Positions 5,553-64,000 of a stretch of DNA of 64,000 nt are shown piece by piece. The stretch is from Octopus sinensis (Eukaryota): the NCBI RefSeq assembly GCF_006345805.1, contig NC_043007.1, positions 19,220,001-19,284,000 on the forward strand, read 5' to 3'. A program made the position numbers and the translations under genes. Each line of letters starts with the position of its first letter. The stretch's first letter is position 1. Below the pieces are notes generated by a model. That model saw nothing but the letters and a program-made list of their open reading frames with translations, was not told the DNA's origin and ran no database searches.

Positions 5553-5595
<43 letters not shown>

Positions 5596-6152
5596 TATAT
5601 ATATAATATATATAATATATATACATATATATACACATATATATATATACACATATATATATATATATATATATAGATATATATATATATATATATACAT
5701 ACATACATACATACATATATATATATATATTATATATATATATACATACATATATATACATATATAAGAGAAGTGGGTGGGGCAAAAAAACTGGAAGCAA
5801 TACCATAAAGAAGTCAACAGAGAACAACAATAATTACTGAGGTTATATAAAACAAAATAATAGAAGCAGTAAAGAGAATGGAATCACGTGAAGGTGGGTT
5901 CAATTCCAGTGAGAGTCAGGGTGAGGGTTGCAGAAAACTATTTGTTTAGTTACATATAGCTATTGTGTGTGAGTTTGGGTGGGTATTATAAATATATGCA
6001 TATGTGTGTGTATATATATATATATATATACATACACACACACATACTTATACGCACATTCACACACACACACATACATACATATTTATGTATACATAGC
6101 TACATACATAAATATACATATATGTATGTATATACATATACATATATGTATG

Positions 6153-6195
<43 letters not shown>

Positions 6196-6210
6196 GTATA
6201 TATATATATG

Positions 6211-6252
<42 letters not shown>

Positions 6253-6375
6253 TGTATGTATATATATGTATATGTATATTATATATATATATATATATGT
6301 AAATATATATAGACACACAGACATTCAAATACATATACACAGAAGCACACATAAACACACACACACACACACATA
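5520..6375. repeat. (CA)n/(AT)n microsatellite blocks downstream of the ASL-like gene
   Basis: Direct read; two long interrupted AT tracts. Confidence 0.95.
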
Positions 6376-6552: not shown

Positions 6553-8202
6553 TTATCTTTGGAACGACATCCATTTCTTCAACTGATCTATTTGAAGCTG
6601 TACACTAGCGTGACTTGTCCCTCCCGGAAGTGTGTATTGCTCTACGCTGTTGTTATAATTCCATACAGATTTTACATCGAGGTCAAAAACAGGACTAACA
6701 GATCTAAGCTCAGCCAGAGAGAGTTTCGAAAAAGTGACCCCCTTTTTCTGTGACAGTCTGACACACATTCCAACCAGGCTGTGCGCCTTGTCAGCAGGTA
6801 GGCCCTTTCGTACCATGTAATATTCCAAGTCTGGCAATAACATATCTTCACTTAGGGAAGCTTCCATTTTGTCTGGGTTTATTTTCAAAGAAGAGAGGAT
6901 CGCTCTGGTTATTGGTAAAGCGTTCACAATTGTCTTGTAAATATCAAACATTCCTTTGGCATTTGATAAGAAATCATTGTTGTGTAGGTTTGAGAATTCC
7001 TTCAAGACACTCAACATGTCGGTGTATTCACCAAAGATGTGATTGGTTTTACCACGGATTTCTTCCAAGCTGCGAGCATTCTCGTTCGAAAAGCTACTGG
7101 CGTTATTTTGAACATTGTGTAGTGGATGGGAAAGTTCAACAAACCCGAAATCTTTCGTACTGTATAAAATAAGGTCATTAGCCAAATTGTGGAAGTGAGC
7201 TGCCATGATTGACGCCCAGGCAACATATTCAAAGATGATGTCTTGGTCGTTGACAGCGTCAATGCTGTTTTCTATGATGTCAGCAAACCCGAGCTCTTTG
7301 GCCAAAAACATTCGGTCAACCCCAAAAGGGTTTCCTGCTAGTGCCCCGCTTCCAAGTGGCAGCAAGTCAACTCGTGAAAGTAGATCCATAAGTCTTTCAA
7401 TATCTCTTTTGATTTTCCAACCGAAGCTAAGCAGCCAGTGACTCCATCTGATTGGTCGCGCTTGCTGCATCACGGTGTAGCCAGCCATGAGAACACCAAG
7501 CTCCTTCTCTGCCCGCTCAGTGATGACACCCAAAAGCTCAATCAGATCACTCTTATGAACGCTGATGGCATTTTTCTGCCACAGTCGAAGACTTGTCGCT
7601 AACTGGTCATTGCGATCCCAGCCAGCATTTAACTTATTTGCCGCTGAACCAATCAACTCTGCCAGGCGCCGTTCATTAGCAGCATGGACATCTTTATCAT
7701 CCGGCTTCAAGTCAAACGTCCCGTTTTCCCACTCCATTCCAATCATTTCAAGACCATCCAAAATGTTATGACACTCTTTTCTCGTGAGGAGGCCGACCCT
7801 TGTCAGGCTTTTGGCATAGGCCTTACTGCATTCGATGTCCTCTTTGAAGAGATTGTAATCAACAGTTTGAGCAATGCCATAGTTCTGTAGATTGTCTTTT
7901 GGAGAAGTTACGAGATGCGTTCCGTGGGACTTGGAACTGTTTACCACTGACGGTTGAGTGATGGCATCTTTCAGAGTCAAATGCAATATTTCGTGGAAGC
8001 TTTTGGTGAAATTATGTCTAAAACGGGTGCCGTTGGTGAGATTTGATTTTGAGGTCTTCTTGGTGGGAGTCGTCTGCGTTGACACTCTTGTCTTGCTGTA
8101 GAAAGCACTCATTGGACCCAGAACGAAAATCAATAGCAGTAGGGTCACCGTGAAGATGATCATGATGAATGATTTCATGAAAGAACGGTAAAGGCTCTGC
8201 AT
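6553..8202 (-). CDS. Argininosuccinate lyase-like protein, 549 aa, single coding exon; N-terminal hydrophobic anchor and stalk; catalytic motifs degenerate (probable pseudoenzyme)
   Basis: Uninterrupted ORF that aligns by eye to nearly all of human ASL (SKAY, ANERRL.ELIG, RNDQ, PIRWSHW, LPLGSGA.AGNP.GVDR, DLILY.TK.F.FV.LS, YY.VRKG.P, SVEQY...GGT). The supplied ORF starts at TTG 8235. The first ATG is at 8202, with an in-frame TGA upstream at 8250-8248. Symbol withheld because it is unlikely to be the ASL orthologue. Confidence 0.93.
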   Translation of the reverse strand: MQSLYRSFMKSFIMIIFTVTLLLLIFVLGPMSAFYSKTRVSTQTTPTKKTSKSNLTNGTRFRHNFTKSFHEILHLTLKDAITQPSVVNSSKSHGTHLVTSPKDNLQNYGIAQTVDYNLFKEDIECSKAYAKSLTRVGLLTRKECHNILDGLEMIGMEWENGTFDLKPDDKDVHAANERRLAELIGSAANKLNAGWDRNDQLATSLRLWQKNAISVHKSDLIELLGVITERAEKELGVLMAGYTVMQQARPIRWSHWLLSFGWKIKRDIERLMDLLSRVDLLPLGSGALAGNPFGVDRMFLAKELGFADIIENSIDAVNDQDIIFEYVAWASIMAAHFHNLANDLILYSTKDFGFVELSHPLHNVQNNASSFSNENARSLEEIRGKTNHIFGEYTDMLSVLKEFSNLHNNDFLSNAKGMFDIYKTIVNALPITRAILSSLKINPDKMEASLSEDMLLPDLEYYMVRKGLPADKAHSLVGMCVRLSQKKGVTFSKLSLAELRSVSPVFDLDVKSVWNYNNSVEQYTLPGGTSHASVQLQIDQLKKWMSFQR

Positions 8203-8411
8203 GATGGGTTTTGTAGAATTGATCAAAGAGCGCAATACGGAGGGAGATCAGTGAGATGTGATGGCTCGTTTCCAAGACGATGAGTTGGAAGACAGAACAA
8301 TGGTCATTAAAAAAACAATATAAAATGGGAAAATAAAACAAAATGGAATAAATGGAACTATTACAATAACAGGATGAAGACGGCCAAATTTCTTCCAGTT
8401 GGTCAGGCAAC

Positions 8412-8432
8412 CTGTGAAAGAGAAGTAAACAG
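8412..8432 (-). promoter_or_regulatory. Probable splice acceptor of a 5'-UTR intron of the ASL-like gene
   Basis: Minus strand reads gtttacttctctttcacag|gttgcc, a pyrimidine tract plus CAG about 210 nt upstream of the ATG. Confidence 0.55.
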
Positions 8433-8459: not shown

Positions 8460-8706
8460 CTTTACATACATACATACATACATACATACACACATATATA
8501 CATACATACACACACGTACATACATACATACATAAATACATACATACATACATACATACATACACACGTACATACATACATACATACATACATACACACA
8601 CACATATATACATACATACATACATACATCCACACACACACATATATATACATACACACACACACACATATACATACATACATACATACATACATACATA
8701 CATACA
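8460..8706. repeat. (TACA)n microsatellite
   Basis: Direct read. Confidence 0.95.
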
Positions 8707-9914
8707 TAATATATTTATCAAATACACATTATGATGGATATATATTGCAAACATAAAAATATTTCACATGCATGAAAAAAATTGATTTGATGCACTCAAG
8801 GGAGAGAGAGAGAGCGAGAGAGAGAGAGGGAGAGAGAAAGAGAGAAAGAGAGAGGGAGAGAGAGAGAGAGAGAGAGAACATGTATGATTTGTTTATTAGG
8901 TTTTTTCATCAATAAAATATGCATTTGGGCATGAGGCTAGTAATTTCGGTGAAGGCGGTAAGTCACTTAAATTGACCCAAGTACGCAACTGGTACTTATT
9001 TTATCGACCTCAAAAGGGTGAAAGGCAAAGCTGACCTCATCAGAGTCTGAACTCAAAACATAAAAACTGACCAAATCTCCAGAAATAGTTTCAATTGTCT
9101 TGCTTTTCTCTTGTCTATGATGTTCACTCTTGTAAGCTTTCTGCCAACCGACGTCTTTGGAATTTGTATGAACCCTTCTTTTATTTCAGGGAAGCTCTTT
9201 ATGCTACGGTGACCTCTTGCCTTGCTTGGGACAAGATCATCAGAAAAATCAAATAGACAATTTTCCCTTAATCAACAACGGCACATAAAAAAAAACACCA
9301 TCCGAGCATGGCCGTTCGCCAGCCTCGTCTGGCACCTGTGTCGGTGGCACATAAAAAGCACCCACTACACTCACGGAGTGGTTGGCGTTAGGAAGGGCAT
9401 CCAGCTGTAGAAACATTGCCAGATCTGACTGGCCTGGTGCAGCCTTCGGGCTTCCCAGACCCCAGTTGAACCGTCCAACCCATGCTAGCATGGAAAGCGG
9501 ACGTTAAACGATGATGATGATGAAAGAGATGAATGTGAAAACCTTTTAAACACTCTACGAGGGAATTGGCACGAACTGCATCAAGTACAGAACCATAACT
9601 GGAAAAACAGGCTGTTCAGGACAAACATAAAACCTTTCAAACTGGGTCTTTAAATAATAAATGAAAACAGCTGTAAATTGCCTGAAAGACTCTCAGTGAA
9701 GGGACATAAAAAACAGTGTAGGAAAACTCTAAATCTTCTGATGCTTACATGAACAACCACATTGCTAGGTAAGCACAAAAAAGTTGAAGCTACGCCATCA
9801 AAATACAGGGTGTTCAAAAAGTCTCTCTGCAGTAAGAGTTTTATTGTAAAATATTTCTAAGATGGTATAAGACTACAAAAGAATATATCAGACTTTAAAA
9901 AAAAATTATAGATA

Positions 9915-21818: not shown

Positions 21819-22289
21819 TGTGCAAGTGGCTGAGTACTCCACAGACATGCGTAACCTTAATGTAGTTTTGGGTGAGGTGAGACGGGAGAGGGATGACGCC
21901 CCACCCCCACCGCACTTCTCCACCATCACCACCACCACCACCACAACCACAGCTACGCTACCGAATTCTCACGAAGAATTTGTTAACCTTGAAAATTTAC
22001 CTGTACGTATTTTCCAAACTTGCACCTGATTCTTTCAGGTGTAAGAAGAGGAAACAAACTGTCGCATCCATCAAACCGTAAATTATAATGATAATAATAA
22101 TAATAATAATAATAATTATAGTAATGATGATGATGATGATGATGATAATAATGGTGATGATGAAGATCATGGTGATGATGATAATGATGTCAAGTTGTTC
22201 CCCAAACAGAAGGAATTTCGGAGAAGGCGTTCTGTAAGTTAAGAGATCAATATAGTATTGGAAACTAAAATTGGATTGGAATGAAGTCA

Positions 22290-43788: not shown

Positions 43789-45765
43789 TTAAAAACAAAA
43801 TTACTAAGGTTGATTTGTTCAACTGAACGTTTCAAGGTGGTGCTGCAGCATGTCTGTAGTCTTCTGATTAAACCAAGTAAAAAATATAGAAGAGATGCTG
43901 TCAGAAAATTGGTTCTGAATTTGGTAGTTGTTATCCCTGTTTGCTTTTGGCTTTGGCAGTTAATCATTGCCTGGTTTATTTCTTTATCTCTAAAACTGAT
44001 TCCCAGTGGATTGCTATGATTGTGTGTTGTTTAACCTTTTAACATTCAGATACTATAGAATGTAATATTTATTTATTTGCATTGCTTTGAATGAATCATC
44101 ATCACTGCCTTGTTTCTCTGAGATTTTGATGATGTGATTGCTTATTCTTTGGAATAACATTGTAGCATAGGTGTGAGGGACCAGATCTAGCTGGTTTAAA
44201 AGACAAAGGGTTAAATGAAGATTATTGCTAGAAATAGCAGCAACTACACTCAGAATATAATAGCTTTTCTAGCAGAGATTTGGTTGAGGATAGAATCTTT
44301 TGTGACTAGAAAGTGTTTGAGTTGTAGTTTTGGCATCCTGGAGACTGAGCTTCATCAATTTGCACAGGCTCTAAAGTTCCTACCATTTTTTCTATTTAGT
44401 TAAAGGAAACAATATGAGTAAATTTCACAATACATGTAGAACCAATCACTTATGGATTGAGTACCTCTAACAGTTAACTGATGCATCTTATTATAAGAGG
44501 CATCTTGAATGAAACAAAATTAATTCTAAAAGATTGCAATAGATTTTGTTACTTAAATCAGTATAATAGAGAAAACCTAAAGTAATTACCCTTTATGTTG
44601 TAGATCACACCCAAGTAGCACTGCATATTCTATGTATCTATGTCCTTGATGAGGGTTTGATCCTAGTGATATATCTGTTCCTATCCTAAGTCATTATGAT
44701 GTTATTGAAACTAACCCCAGCTCTCCGAGTAATCTTTTTACTCCTGACGAGTATAGTTTTTCTGAATGACTGCCTTGTTTCTCTTAGATTTTGATGATAT
44801 GATTGCTTATTTTTTTTAGAATAACATTGTAGCATAGGTGTGAGGGGCCAAATCTAGCTGATTTTGAACATAAAACAGGTTTAATATTATGGCTGGTTTA
44901 AAAGACAAAGGGTTAAATGAAGATTATAGCTAGAAATGGCAGCAACTACATACTGCTTCAGTTGTATTTTTGGCATCCTGGTGACTGAGCTTCATCAATT
45001 TGCTCAGGCTCTAAAGTTCCTACCATTTTTTCCATGATAGTTAAAGGAAACAATATGAATAAATTTCACGATACATGTAGAACCAATCACTTATGGATTC
45101 AGTACCTATAACAGTTAACTGATGCATCTTGAATAGTACAAGAAAAAAATTCTAAAATTTGACACAGAAAGGTAGCAATGGCACGTAACAAGCACCATCC
45201 GTTCGTGGCCGTCTGCCAGCTCCGTCTGGCACGTAAAAAGCACCCACTACACTCATGGAGTGGTTGGCGTTAGGAAGGGCATCCAGCCGTAGAAACACTG
45301 CCGGATCAGACTGGGCCTGAAGCAGCCTTCTGGCTTCCCAGACCCCAGTTGAACTGTCCAACCCATGCTAGCATGGAAAGCGGACGCTAAACGATGATGA
45401 TGATATCGACCCCAGTGCATCACTGGTACTTAATTTATCGACCCCGAAAGGATGAAAGGCAAAGTCGACCTCGGCGGAATTTGAACTCAGAACGCAGCGG
45501 CGGACGAAATACCACAAAGCATTTCACCGGGCATGTTAACGTTTCTGCCAGCTCGCCACCTTATTACCACTACTATTACCACTGATGCTGCTGTTACTAT
45601 GGAATGAGATGATTGGATTCAGCTGTTTGGATGCTGATGATGTAGCATGGCTGACTGGATGTTCAGCATGTTTTGGGCACTGGAAGCAAATGTACATCCA
45701 AGGGAGTAGAAATATACACATACAGATTGAGAGGGGTAGAGGAGAGAGAGATTAAAATTCCTTAA

Positions 45766-52597: not shown

Positions 52598-54228
52598 GAA
52601 ATGTGGCAAGCTGGGAGAATCATTAGCAGGCTGGGTGAAATGCTTTATGGTATTTCGTCTGCCGCTCTGCTCTGAGTTCAAATTCCTTTCGTCCTTTTGG
52701 GGTCAATAAATTAAGTACCCGTGAAACACTGGAGTCGATGTAATCAACTACTCCCCTCCCCACAAATTTCAGGCCTTGTGCCTTCAGTAGAAAAGATTAT
52801 TATTATTATTGTGGCACGTAAAAAGCACCCACTACACTCTCGGAGTGGTTGGCGTTAGGAAGGGCATCGAACTGTAGGAACTCTGCCAGATCAAGATTGG
52901 AGCTTGGTGCTGCCATCTGGTTCGCCAGCCCTCAGTCAAAGTCGTCCAACCCATGCTAGCATGGAAAGCGGACGTTAAACGATGATGATGATGATTATCA
53001 TTATTAAGATGGCATACTAGCAGAACTGTTAGCACATCAGACGAAATGCCACTAAGCATTTTGTCTGTCTTCACATTCTGCGTTCAAATTCCACTGAGGC
53101 TGACTTTACTTTTCGTCCTATTGGGGTCAATAAAATAAGTACCAGCTGAGTACGAGGGTTGATGCTATCGTCTACCCCACCCAATTTCGGGCCTTGTGTT
53201 TATAGTAGAAAAGATCATTATTGTTATTATTATCTCCACCTTAGCAAAGACGGAGGTATTGTTTTCAGTCATGTTTGTTTGTTTGTCCCTGGACAAGATA
53301 TCTCAAGAACCGCTGAATGGATTTGGATGAAACTTTCAGGGATGTTTGGCCTCATGACTGGTATAAACTGATTAGATTTTTGTATTGATCCGGTTTTGAA
53401 CACGGATTCTGGATTATTTGTTATATTTACTTTACATGAAGTATTACAATCTTACATTGACTTTCAAATCTTTCTCTGATTATCTCCCTTGAAAGCATGC
53501 TCATGGTTTCCACTTAAGTTATGACGGTGTTGCTGTTTCCAAAGTTTTATTTTCATTTCTCTACTTGCGTCTCTATCTTAGTAGAAACTAACAGATATAG
53601 AAATCAAACGGCAGTACTGCCATAGAGAAAGAGTTGAGGTACCAAAAATAAGGGCCATAAATCGCTTCAATATTAATATTTTTCATGTTAATTCAAATAA
53701 TTTTGGAAAGGATTTAAATAAAAGGACCAACTCATCCGACACCCACCAATAAAATGTGCTTGAAATTAGGCAAAAGTCACTAATTTTCACTAAACGTATT
53801 TATAAGCTGATGGCACGTAAAAAGCACCAACCAATCGTGGCCATTGACAGCCTCCCCTGGCACCTAAAAAGCACCATCCGTATGTGGCCGTTGCCAGCGC
53901 TGCCTTGACTGGCTTCCATGCCGGTGGCACGTAAAAAGCACCAACCGATCGTGGCTGCTGCTAGCCTCCCCTGGCACCTAAAAAGCATCCATCCATATGT
54001 GGCTGATGCCAGTGCCGCCTTGATTGGCTTCCATGCCGGTGGCATGTAAAAAGCACCAACCATTCATGGCCACTGCCAGTACCCCCTGGCCTCCCAGACC
54101 CCAGTTGAACCATTCAACCCATGCCAGCATGGAAAACAGACGTTAAATGATGATGATGATGATACTCTCAGTTTTTAATCTTATTAACTGAACGATTTTT
54201 TTTGTTATTTTCTTTCTATATTTTTCAG

Positions 54229-54325: not shown

Positions 54326-55693
54326 TAATGTTTATAAACAACACCATGTATTCTCATGTTTTCTCTCCTCAATGTTTCGTCTGTCTGCATAACATCATAC
54401 ATTACCTATTTCTTTATTACCCACAAGGGGCTAAACACAGAGAGGACAAACAAATGGATTAAGTCGATTATATCGACCCCAGTGCATAATCATCATCATC
54501 GTTTAATGTCCGCTTTCCATGCTAGCATGGGTTGGATGATTTTGACTGAGGGCTGGCGAACCAGATGGCTGCACCAGGCTCCAGTCTTGATCTGGCAGAG
54601 TTTCTACAGCTGGATGCCCTTCCTAACGCCAACCACTCCGAGAGTGTAGTGGGTGCTTTTACGTGCCACTGGCACGGGGGCCAGTCAGGCGGTAACTGGT
54701 ACTTATTTAATCGACCCCGAAAGGATGAAAGGCAAAGTCGACCTCGGCGGAATTTGAACTCAGAACGTAACAGCAGACGAAATACGGCTACACATTTTAC
54801 CCGGCGTGCTAACATTCCTGCCAGCTCGCCACCTTAATATCATTGTACATTACCATTAATGAAGTTCTGATCATAAACCCTTTAGCATTCAGATTACTCT
54901 GTCAAATGCTCTGCTTACTTATTCACATTGCTTTGGATTAACCATGCATTATCTTGTAGCTAAGACATTTTCACGATGTGATTATTTAGTTTTAGAAAGA
55001 CAATGTCGGTTAGGTGTGAGAGGCTACATCTGGCCACTTTTAACATAAAACTGGTAGAATATTTAGGCCGGATATGGCCGGTTTGAATGCTAAATGGTTA
55101 AACTAAGCTGCTAGACACAGAAATCTGAGTTCAAGTTGTGCCAAGAAGGTATTAGTTCTGGGGTCATTATTTGTCTGCCAACCGACTTCTCACGGTAGAT
55201 TTCTTTATATCCTCTCGGTTCTACATCAAACACAGGTCACTGACATATGTCTTCCTGTCTTCTGTAATCATTCCTATGTATCTTGTTTGTTTTCAAAGTT
55301 GCCGAAATGATCTTGGATCTCCTGGTTTCCAAGAAATTAGGGTCATCGCTGCATCATTAAACAGCTCTGAGTGCTACTCCTTTGTACTGGACATTGTGCT
55401 CATCATGATCCTGAAATCAACTGGCACTTTGGCCTACCTCTAAGGACTTTGACAGAGAATGGGACCATTCTCCGAAGTAGAGAATCCATCTCCCCCTCTT
55501 GAAATAAGCCTGATCTACTTTCTGTATATATGTATGTGTGTGTGTGTGTATATATATATACATATATATATAAGCACAGGCGTGGTTGTGTGGTAAGTAG
55601 TCGCTTACGTGCATGCGCCAGTTTATTCGCTGTGTTGATTTTTGATGAGACGGACGGAATATTTTGAGCTGCTTCACTGCGGTTTGTTGGTGA

Positions 55694-56820
55694 GTGTTGT
55701 ACCAGTGGAAAGGAATGTATTCGGATCTTAGCGAGTATGAACTATCCCCAGCAGAGGAGGAGCTCGTTAAGGCGGTAAACAGAATGGACGAGCATTTGGA
55801 AAGAGTAAAGAGTTTTGCTAAGGCGGCAGAGGTAAAGAAAAGGGAAGTGGACCTAACCGGACTGAAGGAGCTGAGTAAGATGACACAGAAGGTGGTCAGT
55901 GATGTAAAGTTATTACCCCCGAAAAGGGTTATGGTAAATATGGAAAAGAAGACCATTGCCTACAAAGTGCACTCAGTAGAGAGTAGGAAGGTGGAGCGGA
56001 TGGAGATGGAAAAAGTAGAAAAAGCTCTGAAGGGGCTTTTGAAGAAGTAAAATATATAGCAAAAGGAAACGGATATGGGACAGTGGTTGTCCAGATTAGG
56101 ACAGCAGAGGAGGCAAAGTGGCTGGCAAGTACAACTGTAAAAACTGAGGAACTAGTACTTCTACCCACGTACCTTGGAAGAAAGACTTCTAAGGTGAGGG
56201 TAGAAGGAATTCCACCTGATATAGAAGTGGCTTAGGTTGCGGCAGCTGTCCTCCAAGCCACAGAGATGGAGGAAGGAGACTATAAAGGAAAAATATTGGA
56301 AATTATCATATAAGCGAAGGCGAAGCAACTAGAAAATTTGGGAGAAATAGTATTGAGAGTATGGGTAGAGGGCAGAATTCTGCGATGCTTTAAATGTGGC
56401 CAAAAAGGCCACATTAGAGCACACTACCCTCTACAGAAGAAAACAATAGATGAAACAACAGATGAACCAGTTGTGGAGATGGCGGAGAAAAAAGAGGAAG
56501 AAAAGAAAGACGGACAAAAGGAGGAAGAATGGATAGTAACAGAGTAGAAGGAAGAAAAGAAAGAACACTAAGTGTGATGTGGTACCCCAGTCCAACTCCA
56601 TCCCACCCGCCCTATACAGACACCAGATCCACCCACTCCCTTTTCCCACAAGAAAAAAGAGCAGACACCACAGAATTTAGAAGACCCCTCCCCCAGTGAA
56701 AAAAGGTTACGGAAGAATCTTGTCATTGAGCAATAGTGAGAGTGGAAATAGAAGGACTAGACCAGAGACTAAAGACGAATTAGGACTCAGAGGCAGCGAG
56801 TGGTGTTACTCAGTGTAGGG
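55694..56820 (+). pseudogene. Decayed gag-like ORF1 of a non-LTR retrotransposon
   Basis: Fragmented frames (...LVLLPTYLGRKTSKVRVEGIPPDI..., RCFKCGQKGHIRAHYP = CX2CX4HX4[C>Y] knuckle, then a Lys/Glu-rich tail); stops and frameshifts. Confidence 0.7.
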
Positions 56821-61482: not shown

Positions 61483-64000
61483 TTAACTTGTCTGGATTTT
61501 AACACAGAATATAAAATATTGTCCGTAAAAGACATTTTGACTGATAGATTACCAATTCTGCTTATTCCACTGCCTTTATGGTGATTTCTTACCTGAAAAG
61601 AAGGCCATACATTTGGGACAGGTACTCTTTTTTTTTTGTCTTTTAAATCGTGGTCAGAGTTTGACTGGTGCATATTTTACCGATCCTGGAAAGATTAAAC
61701 AACATGGTCAATCTCACTAGGATTTGAACCTAAAAACATTTTGTCCATCCCTAATAGTAACAATGGTTTCAAACTCTTGGCACAACGCCTAAAGTTTTGG
61801 GAAAGGGGTGGGTGGCCCTAGTTGATTATAGTGACCCCAGTATTCAACTGGTACCTATTTTATTGACCCCCCCCCCAAAAAAAAAATACAGACAAGGGGC
61901 AAAGTTGACCTCAGCAGAATTTGAACTCAGCTTAATGATGGGTGAAATGTCACTAAGCATCTTGTCCAGTGTGCTAACAATTCTGCCAGCTTGCTGCCTT
62001 CAATAATAATAATAATCTCAAATTTTGGCACAATGCCATCAATTTAAGAGGAAGGGGTATTACCCAACGACATTACCTCGGTGGGACTTGAACTCAGAGT
62101 GTAGAGAGCCAGAAGAAATTTTGTCTGACACTCTAACTGTTCTGCCAGCAACAGTAAGAATGGATGACTGAATAATAATAAGTTTGTTTTGTAATGGTTA
62201 GGTCCTGGGTTCAATCCCACTCTGGTATATCTTGGGATGTGTTTTATCTCTTTTTTTTTCCCTATAGTTTTGGGGGTTTGTTGCTATAGAATGTGGGTCT
62301 ACTTCAGTACCATCGTCCAGCGGGCCTAGTTACCGGCAACCAATGAGATCTTGTATTTTGCAATATTCCAAAATGTGCTAATTCTGCAAAAGATACACAT
62401 ACTTTCAGCTGAGTGGACAGCAACAAATTGAAGTTTCTTGACCAAAGAGACAATGCACTGCCCGGTCCAGTAATTGAAACCTCGACATTATGACCACGAG
62501 CCCAACAGTTTATCTATTAAGCCATGCACCTACTATTCTTTAGTATAATGGAACTATTTTTTTTTCACTAAAGGCAGTAGAGTGTGTTTAGAAGGAAATT
62601 TGGCTGTCATTTCTAGCAGGTTGAGCAGTCACATAGATGCTCTCCTGTTGATTTATAAACAGTATATTAAGTGGGTGATAGCTTTAATTAAAACTCTAAT
62701 TAAAAATTGTAAATACCTGTGCTGGTGGCATGTGAAACATTTGAGTGAGGTCATCACCAGTGCCGCTGGACTGGCTCCTGTGCAGGTGGCACATAAAAAG
62801 CACCATTTGGACGTGGCCGTTGCCAGTACCTATTTCTTTACTACCCACAAGGGGCTAAACACAGAGAGGGGACAAACAAGGACAGACACACGGATTAAGT
62901 CGATTATATCGACCCCAGTGCGTAACTGGTACTTATTTAATCGACCCCGAAAGGATGAAAGGCAAAGTCAACCTCGGCGGAATTTGAACTCAGAACGTAA
63001 CGGCAGACGAATGGCCCTCGTGCCGGTGGCACATAGAAGCACCCACTACACTCTCGGAGTGGTTGGCGTTAGGAAGGACATCCAGCTGTAGAAACACTGC
63101 CAGATCAGATTGGAGCCTGGTGCAACCATCTGGTTCGCCAGTCCTCAGTCAAATCGTCCAACCCATGCTAGCATGGAAAGCGGGCGTTAAACGATGATGA
63201 TTAATGATACATCGACTGTGTTTCTTTTGCAGATTTGTTTTTACTTTTTCATTTTAGCGTGCTGTTGTGGTTAAGAAGCTTTGCAATCACATGGCTTGCA
63301 GTTCAATCCCATCATGCAGCAACTTGGACAAGAGACTTCTACTATAATTCTAAGCTGACCGATAACTTGTGAGATTTCAGTAGACAAAACTGTGTGAAAG
63401 TTTGTCATATACATGCATGTATGTATGTGTGTGTATGTATGTATTTATATATGTATCTATGTATGTGTGTCTTTCTTTAGTTTTATCTCAAGATTTCTTG
63501 CCAATAGAGAAAGAACCAGTTTCTAACTCAGATCCAAGGCTCCTTCTTTGGAATTTCAACATCAACAACAGGGTATTTTTGTTTGTATGTATATGTGCAG
63601 ACTTGTATGTTTTGTTTTATGTATGTATTCTCATGCATATAATTGCATATCTAGACATGCACATATATATCTAAATGATAAACTTCTGGAAAGTTTTACA
63701 GATTTTTACAGTTCCAGTGATGGATTGGATCTGTAGTCTTCGAATTAGCTTTCTCCTTCCTAGTTTTTAGAAGCCTAATTTGGGGGAGGTGGGGGATGAG
63801 TCGATTACATCGACCCCAGTGTACTTATCTTAATGCTCTCGGAAGGACGAAAGGTAAAGTTAACCTCAGCAGAATTTGAACTCAGGACATAGCGATTGGT
63901 GAAATACCGCTAAGCATTTCGTCCAGCATGCTAACGGTTCTGCCAACTCGCCGCCTTAATAATAATAATAATATTTTCTACTCTAGGCGCAACACCTGAA

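Follow-up and report, generated by a model that had tools for sequence, protein, structure and literature searches.

Has an argininosuccinate lyase (ASL) of octopuses moved into the secretory pathway or onto the cell surface, and does it still act as an enzyme there? The question is raised by a single open reading frame (ORF) on the minus strand of a 64,000-nucleotide stretch of the Octopus sinensis genome (contig NC_043007.1, positions 19,220,001 to 19,284,000; hereafter the window, to which all coordinates refer), which matches part of chromosome CM016869.1 of assembly GCA_006345805.1 exactly. The ORF runs without interruption from an ATG at 8202 to a TAA at 6553-6555 on the minus strand. 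Its product of 549 amino acids (aa) begins with a basic tail of 10 residues and a hydrophobic segment of 19, continues with a disordered stalk rich in Ser, Thr and Lys, and ends in a complete ASL/delta-crystallin fold. An earlier note on this DNA had proposed that the ASL fold was relocated to the secretory pathway or the cell surface, and that the protein might stand for a lineage-specific class. The second proposal is supported by our analysis: proteins combining the basic tail, helix, stem and ASL fold were found only in coleoid cephalopods in the databases searched, are conserved, evolve under purifying selection and, in cuttlefish, are encoded by spliced mRNA. As to the first, the general layout, the conserved N-glycosylation sequons, the loss of an ancestral sequon (FNAS) and the basic residues before the helix all agree with it, the luminal side of the domain being predicted from sequence.

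With a rough probability of 0.6, we regard the product as a type II signal-anchored, N-glycosylated, probably tetrameric ASL-fold protein, enzyme-like in decapods and, in octopods, a pseudoenzyme with a binding or scaffold role. Beyond the earlier note, the analysis points to a retrogene origin, to strong constraint on the octopod pseudoenzyme and to a cuttlefish orthologue that is apparently catalytically competent. The parts of the gene and its product are as follows.

6553..8202, minus strand: whole coding sequence of the anchored ASL paralogue, 549 codons plus TAA in a single exon (ORF call; equals P0128)
8173..8202, minus strand: residues 1-10, MQSLYRSFMK, short basic tail, predicted to be cytosolic (R6 and K10 in all orthologues)
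8116..8172, minus strand: residues 11-29, SFIMIIFTVTLLLLIFVLG, predicted hydrophobic signal-anchor or transmembrane helix (hydropathy, conservation, AlphaFold2)
7927..8115, minus strand: residues 30-92, invariant GPMSA followed by a Ser/Thr/Lys-rich stalk with sequons N54, N57, N64 and N88 (predicted local distance difference test, pLDDT; composition; ratio of non-synonymous to synonymous substitution rates, dN/dS)
8035..8043, minus strand: sequon N54-L-T, conserved in octopods and decapods (alignment of anchored forms)
8005..8013, minus strand: sequon N64-F-T, conserved in octopods and decapods (alignment of anchored forms)
7870..7926, minus strand: residues 93-111, ASL N-terminal arm in degenerate form, originally WGGRF...FNAS (aligned to the cuttlefish orthologue)
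6556..7869, minus strand: residues 112-549, ASL/delta-crystallin fold, Lyase_1 plus ASL_C2 (Pfam, PDB, AlphaFold2, Foldseek)
7717..7725, minus strand: sequon N160-G-T in a domain-1 loop, NKT in decapods (8 of 8 anchored forms)

An intact and transcribed gene of coleoid cephalopods

The encoded protein equals P0128; an O. vulgaris model departs from it at a single residue, and its identity to O. bimaculoides XP_014774460 is 99%. An in-frame TGA is located 16 codons upstream of the ATG at 8202 (8250-8248), where it terminates a short upstream ORF and so excludes any earlier start of the main ORF; in the Argonauta orthologue, too, an in-frame stop is found 5' of the ATG. Repeats aside, Argonauta and window DNA can be aligned only at 8206-6553, that is, from 4 nt before the ATG to the stop codon. 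The start codon assumed in the earlier note is thus backed both by the upstream stop and by the point at which the similarity begins.

Orthologues with a nearly identical N-terminus are present in four Octopus species or assemblies, among them O. bimaculoides, O. vulgaris and one further species, as well as in Argonauta hians (P0002, 88% identity) and in a cluster of cuttlefish-type decapods (P0003 and P0122-P0127, 53-55% identity), the latter including a truncated model from Acanthosepion pharaonis. In L003, a genomic contig from a decapod, lengthening the gene call by 13 codons recovers the same start (MRNLHRSFMKSFL...). The ORF is intact in at least 8 orthologues from two superorders, and full-length protein searches returned no orthologues of intermediate score. 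These genomes also encode a separate, canonical-looking ASL (P0012 for O. bimaculoides, P0019 for Argonauta). Between Octopus and Argonauta, synonymous divergence (dS) is saturated (about 2), and dN/dS is 0.017 in the ASL domain and 0.20 in the stalk; the corresponding values for a second Octopus species are 0.009 and 0.18, and a decapod pair yielded 0.03 overall.

Cuttlefish contigs assembled from genomic runs read ...TTTTCATCTTTTTCAG/ATCCGAGCACG, with a CAG acceptor 38 nt before the ATG. In contigs from seven other cuttlefish runs, a different sequence is joined at the same point (...CAAAAAGAAAG/ATCCGAGCACG), and a second alternative junction is located further upstream. The joined contigs are spliced mRNAs, in which non-coding 5' exons precede a single coding exon that includes the hydrophobic segment. 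The earlier note had held that transcripts skipping this segment would speak against its reading; the spliced cuttlefish mRNAs retain it.

A conserved hydrophobic segment

The first ten residues, the hydrophobic run of about 19 aa and the Ser/Thr/Lys-rich linker described in the earlier note are all found in the translated ORF. The mean Kyte-Doolittle hydropathy of SFIMIIFTVTLLLLIFVLG is 2.79 (2.99 in decapods), a value reached in 35 of 20,000 shuffles of the protein; the maximum among canonical ASLs (n = 38) is 1.65. AlphaFold2 predicts a helix at residues 2-34. R6 and K10 are present in every orthologue, with R2 added in decapods, and the protein thus has a feature expected of a type II anchor, a single N-terminal hydrophobic span of bilayer length with basic residues in front of it. 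Spans of about 19 residues, such as the one bounded here by K10 and P30, are closer to those of type II proteins of the endoplasmic reticulum (ER) and Golgi than to those of plasma-membrane proteins, which is a weak pointer.

That the hydrophobic segment is a genuine part of the protein, as the earlier note held, is borne out by its conservation in orthologues. Residues 1-35 are the best-conserved part of the protein, with 27 of 35 identical between octopods and decapods as against 54% in the domain, and the GPMSA that follows the helix is invariant from octopus to cuttlefish. Between Octopus and Argonauta, 18 of 23 synonymous sites in this region have changed, with no non-synonymous change. 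This extreme conservation suggests a membrane-embedded helix that has a role in its own right. When residues 1-110 were scanned with HMMER against 1.84 billion representative sequences, the scan recovered only the protein's own cluster and P0182 (E = 3e-5); the latter was rejected as a relative of the anchor-stalk module, being a repeat protein with a low-complexity match, and no donor gene for the module was identified in the scan.

Sequons gained in the stalk and lost from the active-site arm

The stalk (residues 30-92) is 33% Ser plus Thr and 16% Lys plus Arg, and pLDDT is below 50 at residues 30-112, where disorder is predicted. The linker had been given as about 75 aa in the earlier note; it divides into a new stalk of about 60 aa and some 20 aa of degenerate ASL arm. 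All seven N-x-S/T sequons (N54, N57, N64, N88, N160, N367 and N517) lie where they had been placed, and alignment confirms the claim that one of them, the NAS at N367, falls inside the former catalytic GSSxMPxKxN loop. Because the total of seven is not above chance, we took the conservation of the sequons, and not their count, as evidence. The stalk taken alone is enriched (4 sequons versus 1.3 expected, P about 0.01 in shuffles).

Sequons N54, N64 and N160 occur in 8 of 8 anchored forms and in 0/38, 0/38 and 6/38 canonical ASLs, respectively. From the helix to residue 66, octopus and cuttlefish sequences align free of gaps, which leaves no alignment freedom. Over stalk residues 36-66 they are identical at 8 of 31 positions (26%), and half of these eight identities are N54, T56, N64 and T66. 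Conversely, the FNAS sequon of the active-site arm, found in 36 of 38 canonical ASLs, is destroyed in all anchored forms. Decapod anchored forms have FGDS at this site, the change from N to G being one of only eight at conserved columns; such a loss would be expected if a glycan there were harmful in the ER lumen.

A stalk motif, KK-x-x-[KR]-S-N-[LVM]-T (residues 48-56, positions 8035-8061), is common to octopod and decapod anchored forms. Processing or shedding could take place at its invariant dibasic KK, which directly precedes the first sequon.

An ASL fold with a dismantled active site in octopods

Both Pfam domains of the ASL/fumarase-aspartase superfamily architecture score above their gathering cut-offs in the octopus protein: Lyase_1 at residues 114-360 (E = 6e-57, 193.9 bits, cut-off 27) and ASL_C2 at residues 458-521 (E = 6e-15, 55.8 bits, cut-off 27.3). 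Among PDB structures, the best matches are to duck delta-2 crystallin and human ASL (E about 1e-119); the alignments begin at query residues 93-113, depending on the chain. In an AlphaFold2 model built with a 46-sequence alignment, pLDDT is mostly above 90 from about residue 113, and a confident three-domain, mainly helical ASL fold is predicted; Foldseek gave a target-normalised TM-score (template modelling score) of 0.90 to both duck delta-2 crystallin and human ASL. The former catalytic motifs were located by alignment.

7603..7629, minus strand: residues 192-200, former C1, HTGRSRNDQ changed to NAGWDRNDQ
7453..7482, minus strand: residues 241-250, former C2, GYTHLQRAQP changed to GYTVMQQARP, with the catalytic His replaced by Val244
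7069..7131, minus strand: residues 358-378, former catalytic loop C3, SDAYSTGSSLMPQKKNADS changed to SHPLHNVQNNASSFSNENARS, carrying sequon N367 (also AlphaFold2)

We compared the anchored forms with canonical ASLs at 167 near-invariant columns, defined as at least 95% conserved across 38 canonical sequences. Octopod forms are changed at 56 of these columns and decapod anchored forms at 8, the octopod changes being concentrated in C1, C2, C3 and PSTYNKDLQEDK, which has become SNLHNNDFLSNA. The catalytic His (His162 in duck numbering) is retained in 38/38 canonical ASLs and 4/4 decapod forms and is Val in 4/4 octopods, in which C2 also carries the substitutions R247Q and Q249R. The GSSxMPxKxN loop with the catalytic Ser (Ser283 in duck delta-2) is intact in cuttlefish orthologues (GSSLMPQKKNPDS) and reads HNVQNNASSFSNENA in Octopus; the GSSLMP stretch is deleted or replaced throughout the octopods, and the Lys pair of C3 is changed from KK to NE in octopus (K373N, K374E).

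The WGGRF arm is degenerate in octopods and kept in decapods. The earlier note was right that the usual ASL N-terminus is not recognisable in octopus, but it has not been deleted or replaced: it has degenerated in place behind an added anchor and stalk, as seen when MWGGRFDGKISQLMEKFGDSIAFDQRLY is paired with SH--GTHLVTSPKDNLQNYGIAQTVDYNLF in the alignment. The octopus protein thus departs from the enzyme at every catalytic motif considered, namely C1, the His, the Ser loop with its Lys pair, and the N-terminal arm. By contrast, cuttlefish orthologues have the anchor and stalk and then a complete ASL with MWGGRF, HTGRSRNDQ, GYTHLQRAQP and GSSLMPQKKNPDS.

The octopod replacement residues are almost all identical between Octopus and Argonauta. 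The ex-catalytic loop is the most variable part of the domain, with 15 of 24 positions differing between the two genera as against 21 of 414 elsewhere; its pLDDT is below 50 at residues 360-373, where disorder is predicted, and each genus has a sequon in it, NAS for Octopus and NKT for Argonauta. Judged from these residues, the octopod form is a pseudoenzyme, whereas the cuttlefish form, with its catalytic machinery intact, may still be an enzyme. The octopus protein should not carry an argininosuccinate lyase annotation.

Probable retroposition followed by divergence

The canonical ASL gene of O. bimaculoides has 16 coding exons over ~14 kb, whereas the coding region of the anchored copy is one exon in Octopus, in Argonauta and in a decapod. 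Because of this difference from the parent-type gene, the anchored paralogue is most simply read as a retrogene older than the octopod-decapod split, derived by one retroposition of a cephalopod ASL. The split, about 300 million years ago by our own estimate, would then give the age of the anchored family. With dS saturated even within octopods, any poly(A) remnant or target-site duplications are expected to have eroded. Since the cuttlefish orthologue has the whole enzyme as well as the anchor and stalk, this module of ~92 aa was added upstream of the whole enzyme.

The anchored forms make up a clade with a Shimodaira-Hasegawa-like approximate likelihood ratio test (SH-aLRT) value of 96 in a tree made without the N-terminal module, and have in common 17 residues seldom or never found in canonical ASLs. 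The octopod stem branch amounts to 3.0 substitutions per site and is followed by only ~0.1 between Octopus and Argonauta, for which canonical ASL gives 0.18; the reconstructed pattern is one of rapid change and then constraint, and not of decay. With octopods removed, a tree joining the anchored decapods to canonical cephalopod ASLs had the higher log-likelihood (+10.9 lnL) and was not rejected in the approximately unbiased test (p-AU 0.69); the trees carry long-branch warnings.

The canonical cephalopod ASLs (P0012, P0019 and P0014) have an N-terminal extension of their own of 33-64 residues, acidic and with a KRPR motif resembling a nuclear localisation signal. Little or none of it is present in most other animal ASLs compared, and it has no similarity to the anchor-stalk module.

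Membrane topology and alternative explanations

In the course of events that we propose, retroposition before the octopod-decapod split would have been followed by the gain of ~92 5' residues encoding a basic tail, a helix of 18-19 residues and a flexible stalk. In this type II arrangement the helix would serve as an uncleaved signal-anchor, the tail would remain cytosolic, and the protein from the stalk through the ASL domain would lie either within the ER/Golgi lumen or at the cell surface, where N54, N64 and N160 would be N-glycosylated and the usual ASL tetramer would probably assemble, held by four anchors. Decapods would have retained the catalytic machinery. On the octopod stem, the His would have changed to Val, the Ser loop to an Asn/Ser-rich, glycosylatable loop and KK to NE, with degeneration of the WGGRF/FNAS arm; the remodelled form would then have been frozen by very strong purifying selection. 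The octopod fold, anchor and remodelled clefts would most likely be used for binding or scaffolding and not for catalysis.

The N-terminus is predicted to be cytosolic because R6 and K10 (and R2 in decapods) precede the helix, in line with the positive-inside rule, and in decapods the flank after the helix is net negative, with no basic residue in the following 15 residues. The luminal or extracellular orientation of the ASL domain is thus supported indirectly. What the data show is the structure of the gene, its orthology, the loss of catalytic residues, the selective constraint and, in cuttlefish, transcription and splicing; the topology, glycosylation, oligomeric state and non-catalytic function are inferred.

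Several points weigh against this reading. In octopods, two basic residues (K37 and R39) lie within 15 residues after the helix, which renders the charge rule alone ambiguous, and N-terminal segments of very high hydrophobicity are also able to insert N-out. The invariant G-P-M-S-A after the helix could be the c-region of a signal peptidase site. The total of 7 sequons does not exceed chance (mean of shuffled sequences 4.8, P = 0.19). We know of no biochemical rationale for a luminal role of the apparently active decapod ASL. Furthermore, unconstrained trees leave the paralogue unplaced within animal ASLs, and no octopus transcript contigs were recovered from Logan, so that expression in octopus is supported by gene models and selection.

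The GPMSA motif bears most directly on an explanation in which the N-terminus works as a long signal peptide that is removed by cleavage behind GPMSA, at about residue 33, and a soluble, glycosylated ASL-fold tetramer is released into the lumen, the secretions or the haemolymph. A basic n-region, an h-region, a helix-breaking Gly-Pro and an Ala at -1 are laid out as in a signal peptide, the motif has been kept from octopus to cuttlefish, and the conserved sequons and the loss of FNAS fit such a protein equally well. However, at 18-19 residues the h-region exceeds that of typical signal peptides, which according to von Heijne's work measures about 7-15 residues. Met at -3 is a poor match to the -3/-1 rule, and type II proteins typically have a conserved Ser/Thr-rich stem adjoining the helix. 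Rapid evolution is the norm for signal peptides, but here one would have to account for the most conserved residues of the protein, free of any non-synonymous change between Octopus and Argonauta. Secretion would share the luminal location with the type II reading, but we consider it unlikely.

The charges past the octopod helix and the chemistry of the decapod enzyme would be better accommodated by a tether facing the cytosol, that is, an N-out helix (type III, P450-like) or an anchor in an organelle, for instance in the outer membrane of mitochondria. This would keep the ASL domain cytosolic, on the side where the substrate of an active ASL is, and the sequons would be irrelevant; such a tether could serve local arginine/nitric oxide (NO) metabolism in decapods and act as a scaffold in octopods. 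Mammalian ASL is reported to act non-catalytically as a scaffold in NO-synthase complexes. N-terminal segments that are long and very hydrophobic, and have only a short tail before them, can insert in this way, and the sequon count at chance level would be as expected. Against this stand the basic residues directly before the helix together with the net negative flank after it in decapods, the survival of N54 and N64 in a stalk otherwise 26% identical and of N160 in all eight anchored forms, and the loss of the active-site FNAS sequon even in the conservative decapod forms. A hydropathy of 2.8-3.0 also favours the signal recognition particle (SRP)/ER route over targeting to the mitochondrial outer membrane. 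On balance, a cytosol-facing domain appears improbable, more so than secretion.

Finally, the idea of a non-functional retropseudogene or annotation artefact with an accidental long ORF and hydrophobic start, which could appeal to the intronless coding region, the lost catalytic residues, the microsatellite flanks and the lack of a full-length octopus transcript contig among those searched, is effectively refuted by the intact ORFs in two superorders, by dN/dS of 0.01-0.03 with saturated dS and conservation confined to the ORF, by cuttlefish mRNA that is spliced and assembled in many runs, and by the fixation across octopods of the very residues that replaced the active site.

We advance tentatively a broader proposal: coleoids may have an ASL-fold family outside the cytosol, in a lumen or on the cell surface, that is catalytically competent in decapods and has become a glycosylated, non-catalytic receptor or scaffold in octopods, with a transmembrane helix whose function is sequence-specific. 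If true, the decapod members would carry out argininosuccinate/arginine-type chemistry in the lumen or outside the cell, or would act on a new substrate.

Upstream elements and surroundings of the gene

Two further features are located upstream of the start codon.

8248..8307, minus strand: 19-codon upstream ORF, MTIVLSSNSSSWKRAITSH*, sharing the frame of the main ORF and ending in TGA, presumed 5' untranslated region (UTR) (ORF reading)
8412..8413, minus strand: candidate 3' splice-site AG after a polypyrimidine tract (ttctctttcacAG/gttgcc), possible end of a 5'-UTR intron (motif kept in a second Octopus species)

A tiny upstream ORF (ATGAAGGATTAG) is likewise present in the cuttlefish mRNA. 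The AG at 8413-8412 is a candidate for the end of an octopus 5'-UTR intron, by likeness to the proven 5'-UTR intron of cuttlefish. Two Logan contigs of ~2.2 kb (L004 and L005) were considered as possible octopus mRNAs and rejected as genomic, being colinear with the window through the candidate acceptor and ending in microsatellites. Such microsatellites closely flank the gene, (AT)n/(ATAT)n downstream and (TACA)n/(CT)n upstream (5556-6311 and 8463-8880), and the short-read assemblies of other Octopus species represented by L004 and L005 break exactly there.

No other ASL pieces were found in the 64-kb window, and seven long ORFs elsewhere in it have no Pfam match. Among the ORFs of at least 110 aa, the one of 118 aa at 55694-56050 on the plus strand is not of low complexity, yet lacks a family match. 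About 4.3 kb downstream of the gene, at 1237-2225, lies a tandem repeat with ~21 copies of a 39-bp unit and a higher-order unit of 359 bp. On the minus strand it encodes IAVANSRHREGLQ repeats, which make up the odd C-terminus of a 631-aa O. vulgaris isoform model (P0129) that departs from the ASL ORF after ...LEYYM. This tail is probably an annotation artefact or an aberrant splice and not a real protein tail.

A dispersed repeat of ~145 nt, resembling a short interspersed nuclear element (SINE), occurs in at least 5 copies in the window (9380-9523, 45262-45404, 52847-53005, 54485-54642 and 63061-63201) and in several copies, with 72-90% identity, in the Argonauta contig L002 (8522-8672, 16219-16360, 20568-20717 and 21132-21208); its ORF translations recur as ...THYTLGVVGVRKDIQL. 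A 148-nt block alike in Argonauta and Octopus (window 22124-22269, L002 1989-2129) is collinear upstream of the gene, at ~14 kb in Octopus and ~8 kb in Argonauta. As a 5' exon or promoter it was discarded, since it consists mostly of (CT)n and (ATC)n and is not interpretable; it holds a near-identical unique core of ~35 nt (GTTTAGTTTCCAATACTwTATTGATCyCTT), which could be a regulatory element or due to chance.

Relation to known proteins and significance

Canonical metazoan ASL (EC 4.3.2.1; human 1AOS, octopus P0012) has the same Lyase_1 plus ASL_C2 architecture and the same fold, with 43-48% identity over ~440 residues, and many structural and tetramer-core residues are invariant in the octopus paralogue too. 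The paralogue differs in its ~92 additional N-terminal residues, which make up the hydrophobic anchor and stalk, and in its single coding exon versus 16; octopods furthermore lack the WGGRF arm, HTGRS, the catalytic His, the GSSxMPxKxN loop and KK.

The delta-crystallins of birds and reptiles, which were recruited as lens proteins and include the best PDB matches, are functionally the closest analogy: they are likewise products of an ASL duplication that took on a non-catalytic role with the fold kept. Their pair of inactive delta-1 and active delta-2 has a parallel in the cephalopod pair of inactive and active-looking forms, which is split between octopods and decapods. Delta-crystallins are soluble, cytosolic proteins encoded by intron-containing tandem duplicates, and delta-1 keeps the catalytic residues. 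The octopus protein, in contrast, is apparently the product of a retrogene and has a predicted anchor, conserved sequons and a dismantled active site; nothing ties it to the lens. It is not a delta-crystallin: the gene is a cephalopod one, the product is anchored and its branch in the tree is a different one.

The basic tail, the span of ~19 residues, the sequon-bearing stem and the C-terminal globular domain are alike in type II single-pass glycoproteins, such as Golgi glycosyltransferase-like proteins and ectoenzymes, which are a topological class and not a family homologous to the octopus protein. To our knowledge, no type II protein has a luminal domain of the ASL/fumarase superfamily, members of which we know only as soluble enzymes and crystallins, and in the papers searched we found no description of an anchored or secreted ASL, from cephalopods or otherwise.

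Pseudoenzyme domains outside the cell include the carbonic-anhydrase-like domains of receptor tyrosine phosphatases and the cholinesterase-like neuroligins, and the S-crystallins of cephalopods are themselves derived from an enzyme. In each case an enzyme fold has been kept under constraint and reused for binding or structure, as may be the case for the octopus protein. The extracellular pseudoenzymes, however, stem from enzymes that were already extracellular, and S-crystallins stay in the cytosol, whereas the cephalopod ASL was apparently relocated first and inactivated later.

Databases label the anchored proteins merely 'argininosuccinate lyase(-like)'. If our reading is correct, they would preserve, in a lineage noted for molecular novelty, a stepwise record, from retroposition through the acquisition of a signal-anchor and glycosylation sites (the cuttlefish stage) to the loss of catalysis under constraint (the octopus stage), and would add a secretory-pathway or membrane member to the fumarase/ASL superfamily. 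The active-looking and inactive forms would offer a natural pair for the study of pseudoenzyme evolution. For the biology of cephalopods, the gene is a conserved one confined to this group, and metabolic reconstructions that count it as a second octopus ASL would err.

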